DNA of 63,563 nt, filler included, from Pelomyxa schiedti (GCA_020536535.1; 4 parts of 4 records of this genome joined end to end with filler, not necessarily neighbours in it); one strand, 5' to 3'; numbered from the whole stretch's first letter, positions 12,291 through 19,978 are shown. Notes: generated by a model from the sequence alone, not told the origin. Program-made: numbers and translations.

Positions 12291-15200
12291 ATGCAGGCCT
12301 CTACGTCGTCGTCACCAACCGACACGACCGCGCGCCCCAAGGGAGGCTCGCCCTCCATCGCGAAACAGATCGAGGCGGTGGCGTCGGTCTCGCAGCTGGC
12401 CGACCTGCTGTCGCCCAACCGGGACGCCATCGCTCGCGAGCGCTTCTCCGTCATCTCGAGCTACGCCGCGGCCACCAGCTCGTCCTCGGCGCCTCTGCCT
12501 CCCCCCGCCGCCGCGCCCCCCTCGGGCACTCCTGCCAAGGGCGGGGTGCTCAGCAGCATCATCGCCAAGACCAAGGAGGCCGCGGCGGCGGTGGGCGCGG
12601 CGGTCACGGGCGCCGTCGTGGGGCCTGCGGACGCGGCCGCGTGCGCCGCGGCGGCGGCGGAGGCGGCGTCGGGGGACGACGCGAGGAGGGCGAGGGAGCA
12701 GCGCTCCGCCGAGGCCGTGGGGGCCTCGCGGCTGATGACGGGGCTGAGGCGCCTCGCAATCGAGATTGTGGGACAGTTTGGGAATGCGCCTGTCAAGACC
12801 AAGGCAATGGTTGACGACGTGGTTTCTTTGTCACGTGTGGAAGACCGTGAGGTAGTCTTTGTTGTTTGTCTATCCAAAAAAAAATTTTTTTTTTTTTGTA
12901 AAATTTGTGGCTAAGGGTTGGTAGAGGGCAATATATTTCATTCCCCTGAAAAATAACCCAAAAGGTTGTTCAAGTATTGCTGGATGTATTTGTTTCTCAG
13001 ATTGACCATGACCCCTTGTTACAAGTTTATATGCTGGAGGGGCTTGCTTGTATTCTAAGTGAAGCCCTGACAGAGTTCATTCCTGCTGACCAGATAGTCA
13101 AAACCCTCAATGTAATTACAAGCAAGCTTAAGGATCTCCATGCACAGCAACAGAATGCTGAACGTATATATGACACCCTTAGGGCAGTCAACAGAGTTCT
13201 CCGTGCCATGTGGGCAACTGGGGTTTGTGCCATCTCAAAGGAGGACAAAAATTCTACACTGGGGGTGTTCCAGGCCTTGAAAGATGCATATTCTGACTAC
13301 GGCACCCTGGAGTGCTGGGTTGCAAGTGAGGCAGAACTTGCAAAACAAAACCTTTTGAGAGTTGCAGATGATGAGCTTATGTTACTTGGTGTTGCCAAAC
13401 GAATAGGGCACGGTCTGATGGCGGTGCAATCAGTTGCCACCATGGTTCTTCAGTATGATGTTGGTGCACTTGTGGGTGGATTTGAGGAGCTGCAAACGGC
13501 TTTCAGTGATATCTACATCAAGAAGAGCTGGATGGACCGATTGCTCTTCATTGAATTGTCTTTCACTCAGATTGAATCCGGCTTTGTGGAAGATGACCAA
13601 ATTCCGGCAATGTTGGATCGAATTGGGCAGATCTTTTTCTCATCAAAGGAAAAGGGTGCTGCCTGTGCAGAATCAATACCAGTGGAAACTCCAGCAACCT
13701 CTCCCACTCCAGCTCTGGAAGCTAAGAGAGGCCTAGGTGTGTTCCAAAAGCACATCTCTTCTGTCAAAGCTAAAGTAGAGAAAGTTGCCGAGGCAACTAA
13801 AGAAGTTGTTTTAAATGGAGTGGACTTAGCTACCTCTGTAGTGGAAGGAGAACTTGATTTCACCCTTGGTTATATAAACATACTTGACCGAATAATAAAG
13901 TCTGACACACCTTCTTCCACTTCAATACATACTATGATCCAAATGTGGGGCCTTGAGCAACTTAAGAAAGTACTCCTAAGTGACCATGACAGAGAGGCTT
14001 CCTTTATTCGTAGAAGGCTCACTTCAGAGACCGGCATTAGAATCTATATTTTGAGTAGATTAAAGGAATATGTAGCACTTCCCGAGCCGCTCAATAACCT
14101 TGCCAAAAATTGCCTTCATGCAATCTCCGAGTTTATAGAAATTGAAGAACGAAAGAGACAAGAATACACGGAGAAACTACTTGGAATCAATTTCCCACTA
14201 CGTCGGTATAATAACCGTGATAGTTTCGAAGAAGAACTCAATGATTGTGAGTTCGGGACTAATCCTTCCACTTCCTTTCTTGCTTTTGTAAGATCTCATA
14301 GAATGTGGGTATTTGTTGATACCCCACATTCTAGGCTTATCCACTTTGCCCCTTCTCCGTATCCTGTAAAGGAAAAATCACCTAAACTGGCTTCCATACA
14401 GTATGAAAGTGAAGCTCTCTTCACAGCACCTCCTCCCCGCTCCGCTCCGAAGTTGGATGAAAATAGAAACAAACAGACTCTGGATTGCCTAACTGCCAAA
14501 CTGAAGTCAAATTTGAAATTCAGTGAAGATGCTATCAGCTCTATGATCAGTTCACTTCCGGCGTTTTCTACGTTCCTGTCTTCCATCTAATTACCACCAA
14601 TGCAGAAGTATTTCGTCCATCCCATTGTGCACTTTAAGTTGCTTTTACCTGATGTCTCAACCATCCAGCCTGTAAAGAAAGAACTCTCACTTGCCAGCGG
14701 AGAGATGCTACAAAAGGCAAAAAAGGAATTATTCAAAGTATTTAAGGCTTCATTGGATGACCAGATTGTGGATCTTTGCAAAAAAGCCCAGGATTTATAT
14801 GTCAATGAGATATCCTTACAGTATTATGTTGAACCTAATGTTAAGCTAACCGAATCTCAACCGCAGTCTGTCCCCATAACATTTCCCTTTTTCCAAGTCT
14901 TCATCCAAAAGCCTCGACCTTCAGATGTGACACCAAGGGAAACAATGGACCTCAGTGAATTACGTCCCCGAACCTTGGTTCTAGTTGGAGAGGGCGGCAT
15001 GGGTAAAACTGCATTTGGCAAATATTTGGAAAAGCAGCTCTGGGACCACTATGAAGAGATGCAGATCGTTCCCATATTAATTTCCTTACCAACAATACAT
15101 GATCCAAAGAAACGGTTTCGTCCCAACAATAAATCTTCAAGACTAATTTGGCATTAAAACTCTATGTTTATACAACAGATTGATAGAAAAGTATCTTGTT

Positions 15201-18200
15201 GAGCAAGGGTTCTCATCTGAGAACATCCAAGAACTTAAGGTTTCTGGGAGGCGCTTATTGTTTATTCTTGATGGTTATGATGAAATAAACCTGGAGTTTG
15301 GAATCAACATATGCTCAACAAACTCTCTGGAAGAATGGAATGCACAAGTCTTAATACTGAGCCGATCAGAAAACATTAAAGACCACTATGAGCAATTTGG
15401 TATCACTCGAGGACCACAAGAAGTCTTGAAATGGTATCTTGACTATTTTGATGACAGGCAGACACAAGAATTAGTAGAAAAATACAAAAAATTTGGTGGG
15501 GCTCAAGGTGTGACTTCAGCTTCACTCTTTGCTCAAAATAGCGAATTCCTTCAGGACCTCAAGGAGTTGCTCAAAGTTCCTTTCATTCTATCCATGTTAT
15601 TGGAAATATTTCCATCTCTTAATCATAGTGATGACAATTCTAGGACCAAATATTGCCATGAAGCAGAAGAGTTTCTGTATACCACAAAACTCACAAAACT
15701 CAACCTTTTTGATAAATTTACTGATTTGTGGTTTCAAAGGCAGAAAGCCAAAATTACCCCTGAAAAGCTGGCTGCCTGCCATGCAGAGACAGCCACTTCA
15801 GAATTGCGTTTCAATTTTCTCATTGGGGGAGACATTGTGGAAGACTACAAAACCTTCTGTGAAGATGTTGCAATTTATATGTTTAAATGCGGGGCAACTG
15901 CCTTGCACTACACACCGGTATGGAAAGAAGTAGATGAGGAATCTGCAATTGAGGAGGGCAGGAACGTGGAAGCATTTGACTTTAGATATAAATCTGGTGT
16001 TGCCATAGTAGATACAAAGAACCCCCTCGAGAAATTCTTCAGTTGTGTCAATAAAAGTGTGCAGCTTGTTCGCTCGGGTTGTCCTATTATACTCGAAGGT
16101 AGATCAACCTACATGTTTTTACATAAATCTTTATTGGACTACTTTGTGGCACGTAAAATCCAAAAGGAAACAAGAAGCTGTGCTGAAAAGCCATACACTA
16201 ACTTCTGGAATGTTAGAATTCATGAAACATTACTTGAGACTATTCAACTCAGAACCAACCAGCTAATACAGCAGGTTGTACAAGAAGTTGCTGAAGAATC
16301 ACCAACTCTTGACGATGAAATACGTAGTTTGTTCACCAAGGCTTGTGGTTCAACTCCCGATAAAACTTCAATGGAAAAATCCATTCTTAATTCTATTGCT
16401 GAAGGAAAAAATCCGATGGAGGCTTGTGCAGAGGCAGTGTCAAAGGAACTGCCCCACATCAATTCTAGTCGGCTTGTGGAAAATATCAGGAATAGATCAA
16501 GCCTGAGTCTTGGTGTTACCATTCTTCTCAGATCCCGCATCAGGAAATTCCTAAGAACCAGGGAACAATCTCGCAATACCAAGTATTTCCCACCACTTCC
16601 GCAGCAGGCACTCAATCTGAAATGCTTGGAACGTGAAATCGATGTCACAAAGTTTCTTGTGGAAGCACTGTTACTGGATGACCTTAGTTCCAAGCCAAGC
16701 TTCCGTGATATTCTTCTGATGATTGTAGAGAAATCCAAGTGGCTTTCTGGATGCAATTGCATCGCGGACAATAATGCCACGAAAATTTCAATGGCTGCAG
16801 CTAATTCAATGACAATTCTTGTCAGGGCAAATCACAACTTCTCTGGTGCCGATTTAAGAAATGTGCATCTAAAAGGTGCAGATCTTAGTGGTGGTGTTTT
16901 TCAAAGTACAAACTTTGCAAGCTCTGATATTTCGGAATGTAATATGCAACTCACTTGGTTGTGCAACTCCTGCTTCTCAAGATCTAGAATGAATGGTATC
17001 TACTTTGCTGAAAGACCACATGTTCGAATGGAGAATATTGATATATTTGCTATTTCACCAGATGGTAAATACATTGGTGCAGCTACAGCCGGTGGAATGT
17101 TTGGTCCGGCAACCGTGAGTCTAATTCTCAGGGAAGACGGTTCACAACAGGAACTTTGTACTGGACCGGAGATAGCATTGTGCTTCTTTACACGGAACAG
17201 TACATTCTTCATTACTCGCAACAAGTGGTCTTCAGTACAAGTGTTTGATGTTAAAACTCGAAAAACTATGTGGACTAGAGACAAGGCCTCTAGTGTGAGT
17301 GCGTCCCCAAATAGCCGACTTTGTGCTGTGACTGAGGGAAAAACTATTTCTCTTCTCACCCTTTCTCAGGGAGAGGTAGTTAGTACACTGGTCGATACTA
17401 GTGATGTCACTTGTTCATTCTTCTTCCCATACGAAAATTACCTTGCATCCTGTTCTGCCAGCCACATAGCAAAGATATGGGACCTTACATCGTACTCTGA
17501 ACTATGTAACTTCGAGTGTCCAGAGTCTGCTGTTCTCTGTACTGTATCTTCAGATAGCAAATTGCTTGCAATCTTGCATCCAAATTCTTTGAGTCTCTTT
17601 GATGTTTCTCAAATTAAGCGTTGCCACAAAATCTACCATAAGACCTCAGAAGTATTCACTAAAGCTCGACAGATACAATTTTCACCCGATAATTCATATG
17701 TTTGTACAAGCCAGGTGCAAAAAGCTGAAATGTTCTTTGGATCTGCGGCTCCCGCATGCACAGTTCACATTACCAGTTCGAACTCTGGCGAAACTGTTCG
17801 ATCAATCCCTGGTTCTTACTTCTGCTTTACCCCTGAAGGGACCCTATCTATATTAAAAGACTTTCAGCTCAACTTTTACGACTTATCCACCAGTCGATTG
17901 ATGTTTACACCCAGTAATGGGCCTGCATCACCCCTGGCAAACATAGAGATAACTCCAAGTGCAAAATACCTTTTCGGAAGGGCGAATAATACAATATATC
18001 TTTGGTCACTCCATGATGGAAGGCTGATTCATCGCTTCATTTCGCAACAAGACATTAGTAGCTTCTCCATTTTTTCATCACTCCTTGCAACTATCTCAGA
18101 GAGCAAAATTTTCATCTGGGATATAAAAACTGGTAAAGTCGCAGTAACTTACACTGCTTCTTGCCCTCTTTCTGTGTGTGCATTTTCCCCTGCAGGAGGG

Positions 18201-19978
18201 GTATTCGCAACTCTAGGAAAAAACCAAATAACTTTCTGGGAATTTCATGGAATGTCCTTCACTCCACACATTACTGTACATGGCGACCTTCCCCTACCTC
18301 TTCCAGCTATGCAGTTTTCTCCCAATGGTCGCATCTTGGCAGTGTACACACTTCTTGGAGTTGGTGCGCTTCAAATTTTTGAAGTTGCCACTGGGGAGTG
18401 CCTCTTTTCCCAGACTGCCTCCTCTACAGAATGTTTGTGTCTCTGGAAGAGTAGCCAAGTTCCAGCCCCGTTAAAAGAGGAGCTACACTTTGGACCTTCA
18501 TTATTGGGTGGCAAAATTACTGCCGAGCTTCCACTTTTGTCTAATCAGGTGTTTTTGAGAGAAAGTGCCTCTGGAAAAGAATTAAAAGCACTTGGCCCGT
18601 TCCCCTTAAATTGCTCCTGTGTTGCTGCACAGAACGATACCCTAGTTGTATTTGTAGAGAAAAATGCCTGGGTGTACAAGGTACAACTTGAAAATTCCCA
18701 GGTAGTAGTCAAATTATACAGTCGCGTTAATGGCTCCTACTGGCCACTGGAGGCATCCAATTCAGTATTTGATGAAGTAAAAGGCCTCAATAGCTCAAAC
18801 AATAAGCTTCTCATGCAGAGAGGTGCTATTATGTGTTCAGATAAACCCCCCTTTGCCGTGGTTGCTGATTCAGACATAACCTGGAAGAAAGTAAATATTA
18901 CTACCTGGAATTTTGATGTATTTCAAGTAGCGGTATTATTCCTTCAAAACATAGAGAGAAGTCTAATTTGAAACTAAAAAGAAAACTCTTGCTGGCACAA
19001 AAAGCGTTGGTGCCCTTGCAGCTGTTACCTTTGGAGTAGTTCGTGAATGGGGCCTACAAGCTTTACCAATTGACATACCAAAACTACAGGCATTTGCTTC
19101 CAAACTTGAATCCTCATATTGCTACCCGAGTGCCGAGGACCATAAAAACCCTTACCATAACGAGCTTCATGCTGCAGATGTTACTCAGTCCCTTTTCTAC
19201 ATTGTAACATCAATCATGAAGTCATCAAAAGTATTTGGAGACATTTTCACTCCTCTGGAGTTGCTTTCCTGTCTAATAGCCGGAATTATCCATGACTATA
19301 ATCATCCAGGCCGAAATGGAGCTTTCCTAAAGGCAACCATGCATCCGATTCATTGTATGTACGGCGATTCATGCTTGGAGCGGTTTTCTCTTAAATCCAG
19401 CTTCGAGCTCCTTATGACAAATCCGGCATATTATGTTCTTCAAAGTTTGCCTATTGGGCAGCAACAATATGTCCACAACCTTGTAACACAAATTGTTCTT
19501 GCAACGGATATGTCCAGGTAAATAGAGCCGTTGCTACTTGAAGGTCAACTAACTCTCTTCTAGGCACAAGGAATTCCTTGCCGCATTTAAGGCAAGCGGA
19601 ATTTCCCAAGGCAGCAAGGAAGTAACACCAGCAGAGAAAATACTAATTATGCAAATGTTCATGAAGCTTGCCGATATATCCAATGTAATAAGAGAGTACA
19701 ATACCTGTATCCAGTGGAACGGGCTCGTGATGCAAGAATTTGGGCAACAAGCAGCCGATGAAACTCAGCTTCACTTGCCTGTCACTGTTTTTGTGAACCC
19801 TCCTAACAATTTCCATGTAATTCCAAACCCTCATCACCCCTATTCGTACTAACCCCTACCAAAAAAGGGATTTGCCACAGCCATAGTACAACCACTACTG
19901 GAAGCCCTTCTCGCAGTATTCCCTTCTCTGGAAGAACTCAAACAGCAGATTCAGTCTAACCTAGCTCACAGTATCTAG
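12291..19978 (+). CDS. NLR-like STAND protein: Arm-like, NACHT, pentapeptide repeats, WD40 repeats, fused to a class I cyclic-nucleotide phosphodiesterase (about 2439 aa)
   Basis: Proposed exons 12291-12851, 12965-14560, 14606-15114, 15179-18932, 18982-19517, 19564-19816, 19868-19978 total 7320 nt (divisible by 3). Walker A LVGEGGMGKT, Walker B LFILDGYDEI, FLHKSLLDYFVA, AAANSMTILVRANHNFSGADLRNV, about 10 WD40-like repeats, then WNFDVFQ..PYHNELHAAD..HDYNHPG..LATDMSRH..KLADISN. The NACHT-WD40 and PDE identities are firm; the junction is inferred from splice signals. Confidence 0.82.

Follow-up and report, generated by a model that had tools for sequence, protein, structure and literature searches.

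A NACHT-WD40 protein very likely fused to a phosphodiesterase

Pelomyxa schiedti, an anaerobic amoeba of the Archamoebae, carries a gene in which a NACHT-WD40 module of the STAND type and the catalytic domain of a class I cyclic-nucleotide phosphodiesterase (PDE) are very likely truly fused. The gene lies at 12291..19978 on the plus strand of the window, the whole 63,563-nucleotide stretch analysed here, in which parts of four records of the P. schiedti genome are joined with filler. It is probably one nuclear gene encoding a 2408-aa chimera, best read as a PDE in which a STAND switch has taken the place of the usual N-terminal receptor and would gate the activity. From N- to C-terminus, the protein displays ARM_5, NACHT and pentapeptide domains, about two WD40 propellers, a linker of about 20 residues and a full class I PDE catalytic domain. 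This layout is conventional for a PDE, with the regulator at the N-terminus and catalysis at the C-terminus; the novelty is the use of a STAND switch as the regulator.

The gene has the same coordinates as the GenBank model KAH3742964.1 ("NB-ARC domain protein", 2408 aa), which sits on the 27457-bp P. schiedti contig JAHLWZ010001031.1 of GCA_020536535.1. A search of the PDE piece 18982-19518 against 1.84 billion representative proteins returned a 2408-aa match whose residues 2110-2288 were 100% identical. Eight exons (12291-12851, 12965-14451, 14529-14607, 14669-15114, 15179-18932, 18982-19517, 19564-19816 and 19868-19978, plus strand) and seven GT-AG introns of 46-113 nt form the sole exon chain that reproduces the public protein exactly. 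An earlier sequence-only reading of this DNA had described the fusion as hidden and its spliced product as 2439 aa long. Since KAH3742964.1 already uses the 49-nt intron 18933-18981, at the same coordinates, the fusion is annotated rather than hidden, and the length has to be corrected to 2408 aa. The GenBank model has drawn no comment, and the literature searches turned up no description of the fusion. The same reading had proposed a profile check for NACHT, Pentapeptide, WD40 and PDEase_I, and all four were matched when Pfam was run on separate pieces and on the public 2408-aa model. The GenBank label "NB-ARC" was rejected for this protein: Pfam scores NACHT only, and NB-ARC has no match.

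The P. schiedti genome was assembled from seven whole-genome-amplified single cells, annotated by Augustus, PASA and EVM with Smart-seq2 data, and has an average of 7.43 introns per gene (PMC8887013). The paper describing it makes no mention of NACHT or phosphodiesterase (PMC8887013).

The fusion junction

The open reading frame (ORF) 15180-18971 counts 1263 codons, and a 1251-codon frame is open from the NACHT region through the WD40 region into the first helix of the PDE domain. As the sequence-only reading, whose statements on the sequence all proved correct, had noticed, this ORF passes the usual end of its family and continues into WNFDVFQVA. The family end is marked by a C-terminal cap motif, KGLNSSNNKLLMQRGA (18780..18827, aa 2059-2074), which aligns with ...GLSPINKLFLKQQGA of the Pelomyxa paralog P0157; the bacterial relatives P0158 and P0159 terminate about 25-30 residues past the equivalent motif. 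The cap ends at residue 2074, and homology to the Pelomyxa PDE P0003 starts at KKVNITTW, seven residues ahead of the Trp of helix 1. The homology limits of the two halves thus place the breakpoint within the fusion linker (18828..18884, aa 2075-2093). In an AlphaFold2 model of residues 2060-2408, the linker (model residues 1-31) is predicted to be disordered, with a predicted local distance difference test (pLDDT) score below 50. Helix 1, WNFDVFQVA, occupies 18906..18932 at the 3' end of the NACHT-WD40 exon and aligns with TWNFPIFDL of human PDE3A.

Directly after helix 1 comes the fusion intron (18933..18981, 49 nt, phase 0, GTATTA..CTAAT..AAAAAG), with GT-AG borders. Its removal joins WNFDVFQVA in frame to KTLAGTKSVGALAAVTFGVV...PYHNELHAAD...HDYNHPG, exon 6 opening with KTLAGTK. 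Two stops lie inside this intron, that of the unspliced ORF (TGA, 18969-18971) and one in the PDE frame (TAA, 18964-18966). The earliest in-frame ATG of the PDE frame is at 19216, downstream of HNELH (19156-19170). Because of this stop and the lack of an ATG before HNELH, a separate PDE gene could be translated only from a start inside the WD40 exon.

In two paralogous PDE genes of P. schiedti, L002 (encoding P0003) and L001 (encoding P0002), a phase-0 intron of 55 nt and about 37 nt, respectively, lies at the matching codon, exactly eight codons past the Trp codon (WEFDVFSLV|KTCG in P0003, WRFNVLEVE|TKSK in P0002), and the GTAT donors and CTAAT-type branch sites of these introns resemble those of the fusion intron. 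In a phmmer comparison with human PDE3A, 'NITTWNFDVFQVAKTLAGTK' aligns to 'QLNTWNFPIFDLVENIGRK' straight across the exon junction without a gap. Alignments with PDE4D sequences of solved structures also cross the junction ungapped and begin even further upstream than that of PDE3A. The pattern W.FDVF is found at the helix 1 position in all aligned relatives, and in Trinity transcripts of Mastigella eilhardi helix 1 is contiguous in the mRNA with the remaining PDE domain. In the AlphaFold2 model, a helix at residues 46-53 crosses the exon junction with pLDDT 84-96. The public Augustus/PASA/EVM model agrees fully at this place. With helix 1 encoded upstream of the intron, no start codon of its own and an intron position shared with the paralogous PDE genes, the PDE is unlikely to be a stand-alone gene, as the sequence-only reading had concluded from the stop and the missing ATG.

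Read evidence

Read contigs from two RNA runs (X1 and X2) and two DNA runs were aligned to the region. Sense RNA contigs were found on both the NACHT-WD40 and the PDE modules. Those of X1 lie on 15431-18083 and 19067-19922, and overall sense RNA contigs cover 15431-18506 of exon 5. Their orientation follows from template-switch oligo sequence that precedes three contig starts on the plus side. X1 RNA is spliced at 19518-19563 and at 19817-19867 (GT..AG), and these two splices keep the PDE frame through GFATAIVQPLL to the stop at 19976-19978. Within exon 5, RNA and genome differ at five sites, all at codon position 3 and four of the five synonymous, which fits purifying selection on the exon 5 ORF. 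An exact search of JGI metagenome contigs with a 28-mer of the spliced junction did not find it.

The Smart-seq template-switch starts are at 15822, 17365 and, downstream of the fusion intron, 19067. They mark ends of cDNA inside the ORF and not starts of transcription.

The PDE domain

The class I PDE catalytic domain extends from 18885 to 19975 (plus strand, aa ~2094-2408, exons 5-8). PDEase_I (PF00233) matches residues 2167-2399 with 174 bits over profile positions 1-237 of 238, and a search of PDB sequences gave E = 3e-33. The AlphaFold2 model has a pLDDT of 88.1 and a predicted template modelling score (pTM) of 0.87, and with Foldseek it matches the catalytic domains of PDE1B, PDE3A, PDE4B/D and PDE8A with template modelling (TM) scores of 0.78-0.88 over about 325 columns.

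In an alignment of 18 PDE sequences, all 20 invariant columns are kept. HNELH (19156..19170), with the catalytic His and the first Zn ligand, holds the invariant columns H109 and H113, and the metal-binding motif HDYNHPG (19291..19311) holds H154, D155, H158 and G160. The kept residues include H2168, H2172, H2213/D2214/H2217, the T and D of ATDM, D2325 (LADIS) and the hydrophobic-clamp Phe. Invariant columns thus hold both the catalytic His and all four residues that bind the metals directly (H2168, H2172, H2213, D2214 and D2325, which we take to be the equivalents of the corresponding PDE4 residues).

Two further introns interrupt the domain, both spliced in X1 RNA. The one at 19518..19563 (46 nt) follows ATDMSR and has the same position and phase as in P0002 and P0003. 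The other, at 19817..19867 (51 nt), is the third PDE intron; it lies near the position of the purine-binding Gln (Q-switch) and is found at nearly the same place in P0002 and P0003.

Probable origin of the two halves

A maximum-likelihood tree nests the PDE domain in a clade of Archamoebae (Pelomyxa and Mastigella) with support 100/99. Its sister there is Pelomyxa P0003 (94/83), and its branch has twice the length of that of P0003 (1.13 versus 0.57). The shared introns and the tree argue strongly that the PDE part arose when the 3' portion of a P0003-like receptor-type PDE gene was copied at the DNA level, introns included, and that the copy begins a few codons upstream of helix 1.

The NACHT half belongs to a small family. 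It has one Pelomyxa paralog, P0157, and its other named relatives in the searches are bacterial (Mycoavidus and Glomeribacter); further close relatives, of the same four-part plan, are the 1529-aa P0160 and the ENA metagenomic P0179. In the ESM Atlas, the clusters nearest to it are without exception NACHT/nSTAND families of bacteria. Word-seeded searches, within their limits, gave no homolog of this half in Mastigella, Mastigamoeba or other eukaryotes beyond Pelomyxa. The module is intron-poor, with an exon of 3754 nt, and the 1-kb PDE part has three introns. It is reasonable, if not proven, to regard the NACHT module as descended from bacteria. If so, the gene would be a clean example of the birth of a chimera, in which an intron-poor module, probably bacterial by descent, acquired the 3' exons of an intron-rich PDE gene already resident in the genome.

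The closest relatives outside Pelomyxa, P0158 (Mycoavidus sp.) and P0159 (Glomeribacter sp.), come from Burkholderia-related endosymbionts of fungi. Their relationship to the Pelomyxa proteins hints at gene transfer between bacteria and eukaryotic hosts, which might have gone in either direction.

Proposed mechanism and alternative explanations

In the arrangement that we favour, a PDE gated by a STAND switch, the STAND module would have taken the place of the extracellular-sensor and transmembrane region that is normally N-terminal of the PDE. Binding of a ligand or partner at the WD40/pentapeptide region would lead to nucleotide-dependent oligomerisation of NACHT, and the PDE domains at the C-termini, clustered in this way, would become more or less active. 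The outcome would be a cytosolic, switch-gated sink for cAMP/cGMP. The affinity or substrate range would probably differ from that of the parent enzyme, since the pocket is altered (Gln to Phe, and a second-shell His to Ser). STAND/NLR-type switches drive death-fold, TIR, nuclease, protease and similar outputs, and class I PDEs are governed by GAF, UCR, PAS, REC or calmodulin-binding modules. A NACHT-WD40 switch combined with a class I PDE would, if true, be a new output for the former and a new regulator for the latter.

Several observations, gathered in this and the following paragraph, weigh against this picture. The regulatory mechanism is something that we infer only. At the near-invariant position of the Q-switch, which is Gln in at least 90% of the relatives, the alignment places Phe2371 (19811..19813, NNFH|GF; the adjoining splice 19816/19868 is RNA-verified), and the near-invariant His of LE..H, likewise kept in at least 90% of the relatives, is Ser2245 here (19387..19389, LERFS). 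From work on PDE4 and PDE5, we expect this His to coordinate the second metal from the second shell, and mainly the affinity for the substrate to suffer when the Q-switch Gln is lost. The loop preceding the Q-switch position is also about 5 residues shorter than in the relatives. With the substrate-binding Gln and the second-shell His replaced, hydrolysis of cyclic nucleoside monophosphates is not assured. Judged from these residues, hydrolysis of cAMP/cGMP is plausible and the specificity may have shifted; with two near-invariant residues gone and an evolution faster than that of its sister, the domain may also not be an active enzyme. It is accordingly conceivable, if on balance unlikely, that the fusion is real and its PDE is no longer a cAMP/cGMP hydrolase, serving instead as a nucleotide- or protein-binding bait (an "integrated domain") or as an enzyme for another substrate. 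Both replacements, the shortened loop and the doubled branch length would agree with this, as would the place of the domain after the sensor repeats, which is like that of the integrated domains of plant NLRs (background knowledge). However, the invariant columns are kept without exception, including the catalytic His, the four metal ligands and the clamp Phe, the fold is predicted with high confidence, and mammalian PDE5 Gln-to-Ala mutants reportedly lose affinity rather than turnover. Conservation cannot vouch for the function of the fusion either, because no ortholog was found in any other sampled organism.

Other points concern the expression and the integrity of the gene. The public model is not independent support for the junction, since it rests on the same data. 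The segment 18602-18983 has no RNA contig in either run, so that the fusion splice 18933-18981 is unobserved in RNA, and an X2 RNA-library contig (15057-15289) keeps intron 15115-15178, which means intron retention or genomic DNA in a library that is not pure mRNA. Moreover, an in-frame ATG within the linker (18831-18833), 25 codons ahead of helix 1, could start a PDE-only isoform. One could thus imagine two overlapping units, a NACHT-WD40 mRNA that keeps the 49-nt intron and stops at the TGA 18969-18971, 13 codons past the donor, and a PDE-only mRNA starting from ATG 18831, the fused protein being rare or absent. The RNA gap lies exactly over the critical segment, and unspliced or intron-retaining RNA occurs elsewhere in the gene. 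We nevertheless regard this arrangement as improbable: the other PDEs of the clade are all 800-990 aa long with large N-terminal regions, none being a catalytic domain only; the low-depth single-cell contigs leave many scattered gaps in coverage; the WD40 gene would need to have its last 34 codons in common, and in the same frame, with the first exon of another gene; and the template-switch ends occur at several internal sites and hence are not start sites. Much less likely still, and in our opinion barely credible, is an assembly or whole-genome-amplification chimera of a NACHT-WD40 gene and a PDE gene fragment. The genome does come from single cells amplified by multiple displacement, a chimera-prone method, and the linker is unbridged by RNA, but in each of two separate DNA runs a single contig, at a depth of 28-31x and without differences, spans all 5.7 kb, which argues against an amplification chimera, though the sample is shared with the assembly. 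The join is also in frame, leaves a complete PDE domain and has its breakpoint in a short linker between intact modules, and the flanking genes are ordinary eukaryotic ones (clathrin adaptor sigma, EHD/dynamin-like, MAP65 and ASMase-like phosphoesterase). The weight of the finding is limited by its being a single gene of one single-cell-derived genome, with a joining splice that lacks transcript proof and an altered catalytic pocket.

The sequence-only reading had suggested a role for the protein as an immune or non-self sensor. This role did not find support and would be pure conjecture: no death-fold, TIR, HET, nuclease or similar effector was detected by Pfam, which finds only ARM_5 at the N-terminus and the PDE at the C-terminus; PADLOC gave one marginal match (PDC-S60, E = 8e-4, 15.6 bits) and none for the paralog P0157; and the nearest relatives are uncharacterised bacterial ARM_5-NACHT-pentapeptide-WD40 proteins, not NWD/HET-E proteins of fungi. 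P. schiedti lives with several prokaryotic endosymbionts. The protein might then be an immune-type or symbiont-surveillance STAND receptor, with the PDE, its base pocket re-shaped by the change of Gln to Phe, either erasing a non-canonical cyclic (oligo)nucleotide once the switch is activated or acting as a decoy for effectors directed against the receptor PDEs of the host, but we hold this to be a long shot. The integrated-decoy version, of low probability, was prompted by the altered pocket together with the fast evolution of the domain. If true, either version would be the first eukaryotic link between an NLR-like switch and cyclic-nucleotide turnover.

Comparison with known proteins

The sequence-only reading knew of no described example of a NACHT-WD40-PDE protein, and none appeared in the protein and literature searches. 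No other protein with NACHT and PDE was present among the best 150 PDE relatives, of which the long ones were scanned with Pfam, and the combination was not found among long proteins sharing words with the PDE or NACHT region, which were searched against 5.8 billion clusters in two length windows; these searches did not take in every PDE or every NACHT protein. Full-text literature searches returned no description of a NACHT/WD40-PDE architecture. Likewise, we know of no described PDE with a STAND/NACHT NTPase as its regulatory module.

The Pelomyxa paralog P0157 ("NB-ARC domain protein", 2672 aa) shares the ARM_5, NACHT, pentapeptide and WD40 domains and the same cap motif, with 37% identity over the NACHT region, intron 1 at the same place (VEDRE|V) and multi-kb exons. 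It differs by the absence of a PDE, its cap being followed by a tail of about 590 aa with no Pfam match. In P0157 (L004, 1001-9563), whose exons reach 2.7 kb, the cap reads LKQQGA; the tail opens with ~280 residues that look non-repetitive and goes on in acidic, Pro/Thr-rich sequence, part of it of low complexity.

The bacterial P0159 (Glomeribacter sp.) and P0158 (Mycoavidus sp.) have the same ARM_5-NACHT-pentapeptide-WD40 order, ARM_5 being N-terminal of NACHT in P0159 too, and are 27-30% identical over the NACHT module, with invariant Walker A/B, sensor-1 and winged-helix His motifs. They have no PDE and end soon after the cap, as described above. They also lack a Pelomyxa-specific insert of about 100 residues after the winged-helix motif, which is present in the protein studied here (P0001) and in P0157.

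On the PDE side, the nearest proteins are the receptor-type PDE4-like enzymes of Archamoebae: P0003 (KAH3745332.1), P0002 (KAH3744580.1) and Mastigella eilhardi transcripts. Identity amounts to 46-50% within the first PDE exon (179 aa) and to 37-42% for the domain as a whole, and two introns of P0002 and P0003 agree in position and phase, the third nearly so. Where the fusion has its STAND module, these enzymes have about 550 other N-terminal residues, which in P0002 include an MCP-like PDC sensor domain, and they retain the Q-switch Gln and the LE..H His. This clade is expanded, with members of 800-990 aa at L001 1501-4444 (P0002) and L002 1501-4677 (P0003) and in the Mastigella transcripts P0004-P0009. 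A hydrophobic stretch lies ahead of the catalytic part, and these enzymes look like PDEs of a receptor type.

From background knowledge, mammalian GAF-containing PDE2/5/6/10/11, UCR-containing PDE4 and the response-regulator PDE RegA of Dictyostelium have a comparable layout, with a signal-receiving module N-terminal and the catalytic domain C-terminal. Fungal NWD/HET-E NLRs and APAF1/TEP1-type WD40 STANDs likewise have the STAND NTPase in the middle and WD40 repeats at the C-terminus, and in plant NLRs with integrated domains (NLR-IDs) the repeats are followed by an extra domain. Unlike these three groups, the P. schiedti protein has an ARM_5 N-terminus and no HET, death-fold, TIR or CARD domain, and its nearest sequence relatives are bacterial rather than fungal or animal.

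Another P. schiedti contig encodes P0033 (KAH3758970.1, 1655 aa), with a WD40 propeller, an NMT1/THI5-like (solute-binding-type) domain and PDEase_I. Its PDE falls on a different branch from the one studied here, and it may be a real fusion or a merged gene model.

The NACHT-WD40 half

The NACHT NTPase module covers 14969..16150 and is split by intron 15115-15178. Pfam matches NACHT at residues 810-900 with 33.0 and 35.6 bits (cut-off 26.7) over profile positions 1-99 of 167. The module has a Walker A motif, GEGGMGKT (14987-15010, aa 816), a NACHT-type Walker B, LLFILDGYDE (aa 884), a sensor-1 LILSR and a winged-helix motif, FLHKSLLDYF (at ~16120). When the protein is aligned with P0157 and four other relatives, of which two come from named bacteria, Walker A, Walker B, the sensor-1 Arg (R131) and the winged-helix His (H384) are invariant. 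A PDB sequence search with this part gave a weak, marginal match to the NACHT of NLRP5. By its motifs and Pfam matches, the protein is a NACHT-clade STAND NTPase, for which nucleotide-dependent oligomerisation is only predicted.

Between Walker A and Walker B lies intron 15115..15178 (64 nt, phase 2). It must be real, because only its removal yields ...HDPKKR|LIEKYL, collinear with the paralog and the bacterial proteins. Exon 5 (15179..18932, 3754 nt, uninterrupted frame) then encodes the rest of NACHT, a helical region, the pentapeptide repeats, WD40, the cap, the linker and PDE helix 1. The pentapeptide repeats (16836..16949, aa 1411-1448) match PF00805 with 28-30 bits (cut-off 20.2). The WD40-type beta-propeller region (17043..18725, aa ~1480-2040) is matched by many WD40 propeller families of Pfam, with E down to 4e-24, which span residues ~1510-1950 of the public protein.

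The segment 14452..14668 of the model is poorly supported. Here the main frame has a stop at 14588-14590, which the public model bypasses with a 79-nt mini-exon in another frame (14529-14607), flanked by introns 14452-14528 and 14608-14668. RNA coverage is zero and homology support is lacking over this segment, and its true splicing is uncertain; a single in-frame intron of less than 100 nt that would remove the stop was sought, and none fits. The doubtful splicing has no bearing on the NACHT-PDE fusion.

At the N-terminus, the ARM-like repeats of ARM_5 (PF23948, 12738..13507, aa 150-368) span intron 12852-12964, and their Pfam score rises from 36.5 bits without exon 1 to 62-64 bits with it. 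Exon 1 (12291..12851) encodes an Ala/Ser/Pro-rich, low-complexity N-terminus, and ARM_5 starts at its 3' end. Within it, 12300-12750 forms an island of 69-83% GC in a contig of about 43% GC, with open ORFs in several frames on both strands.

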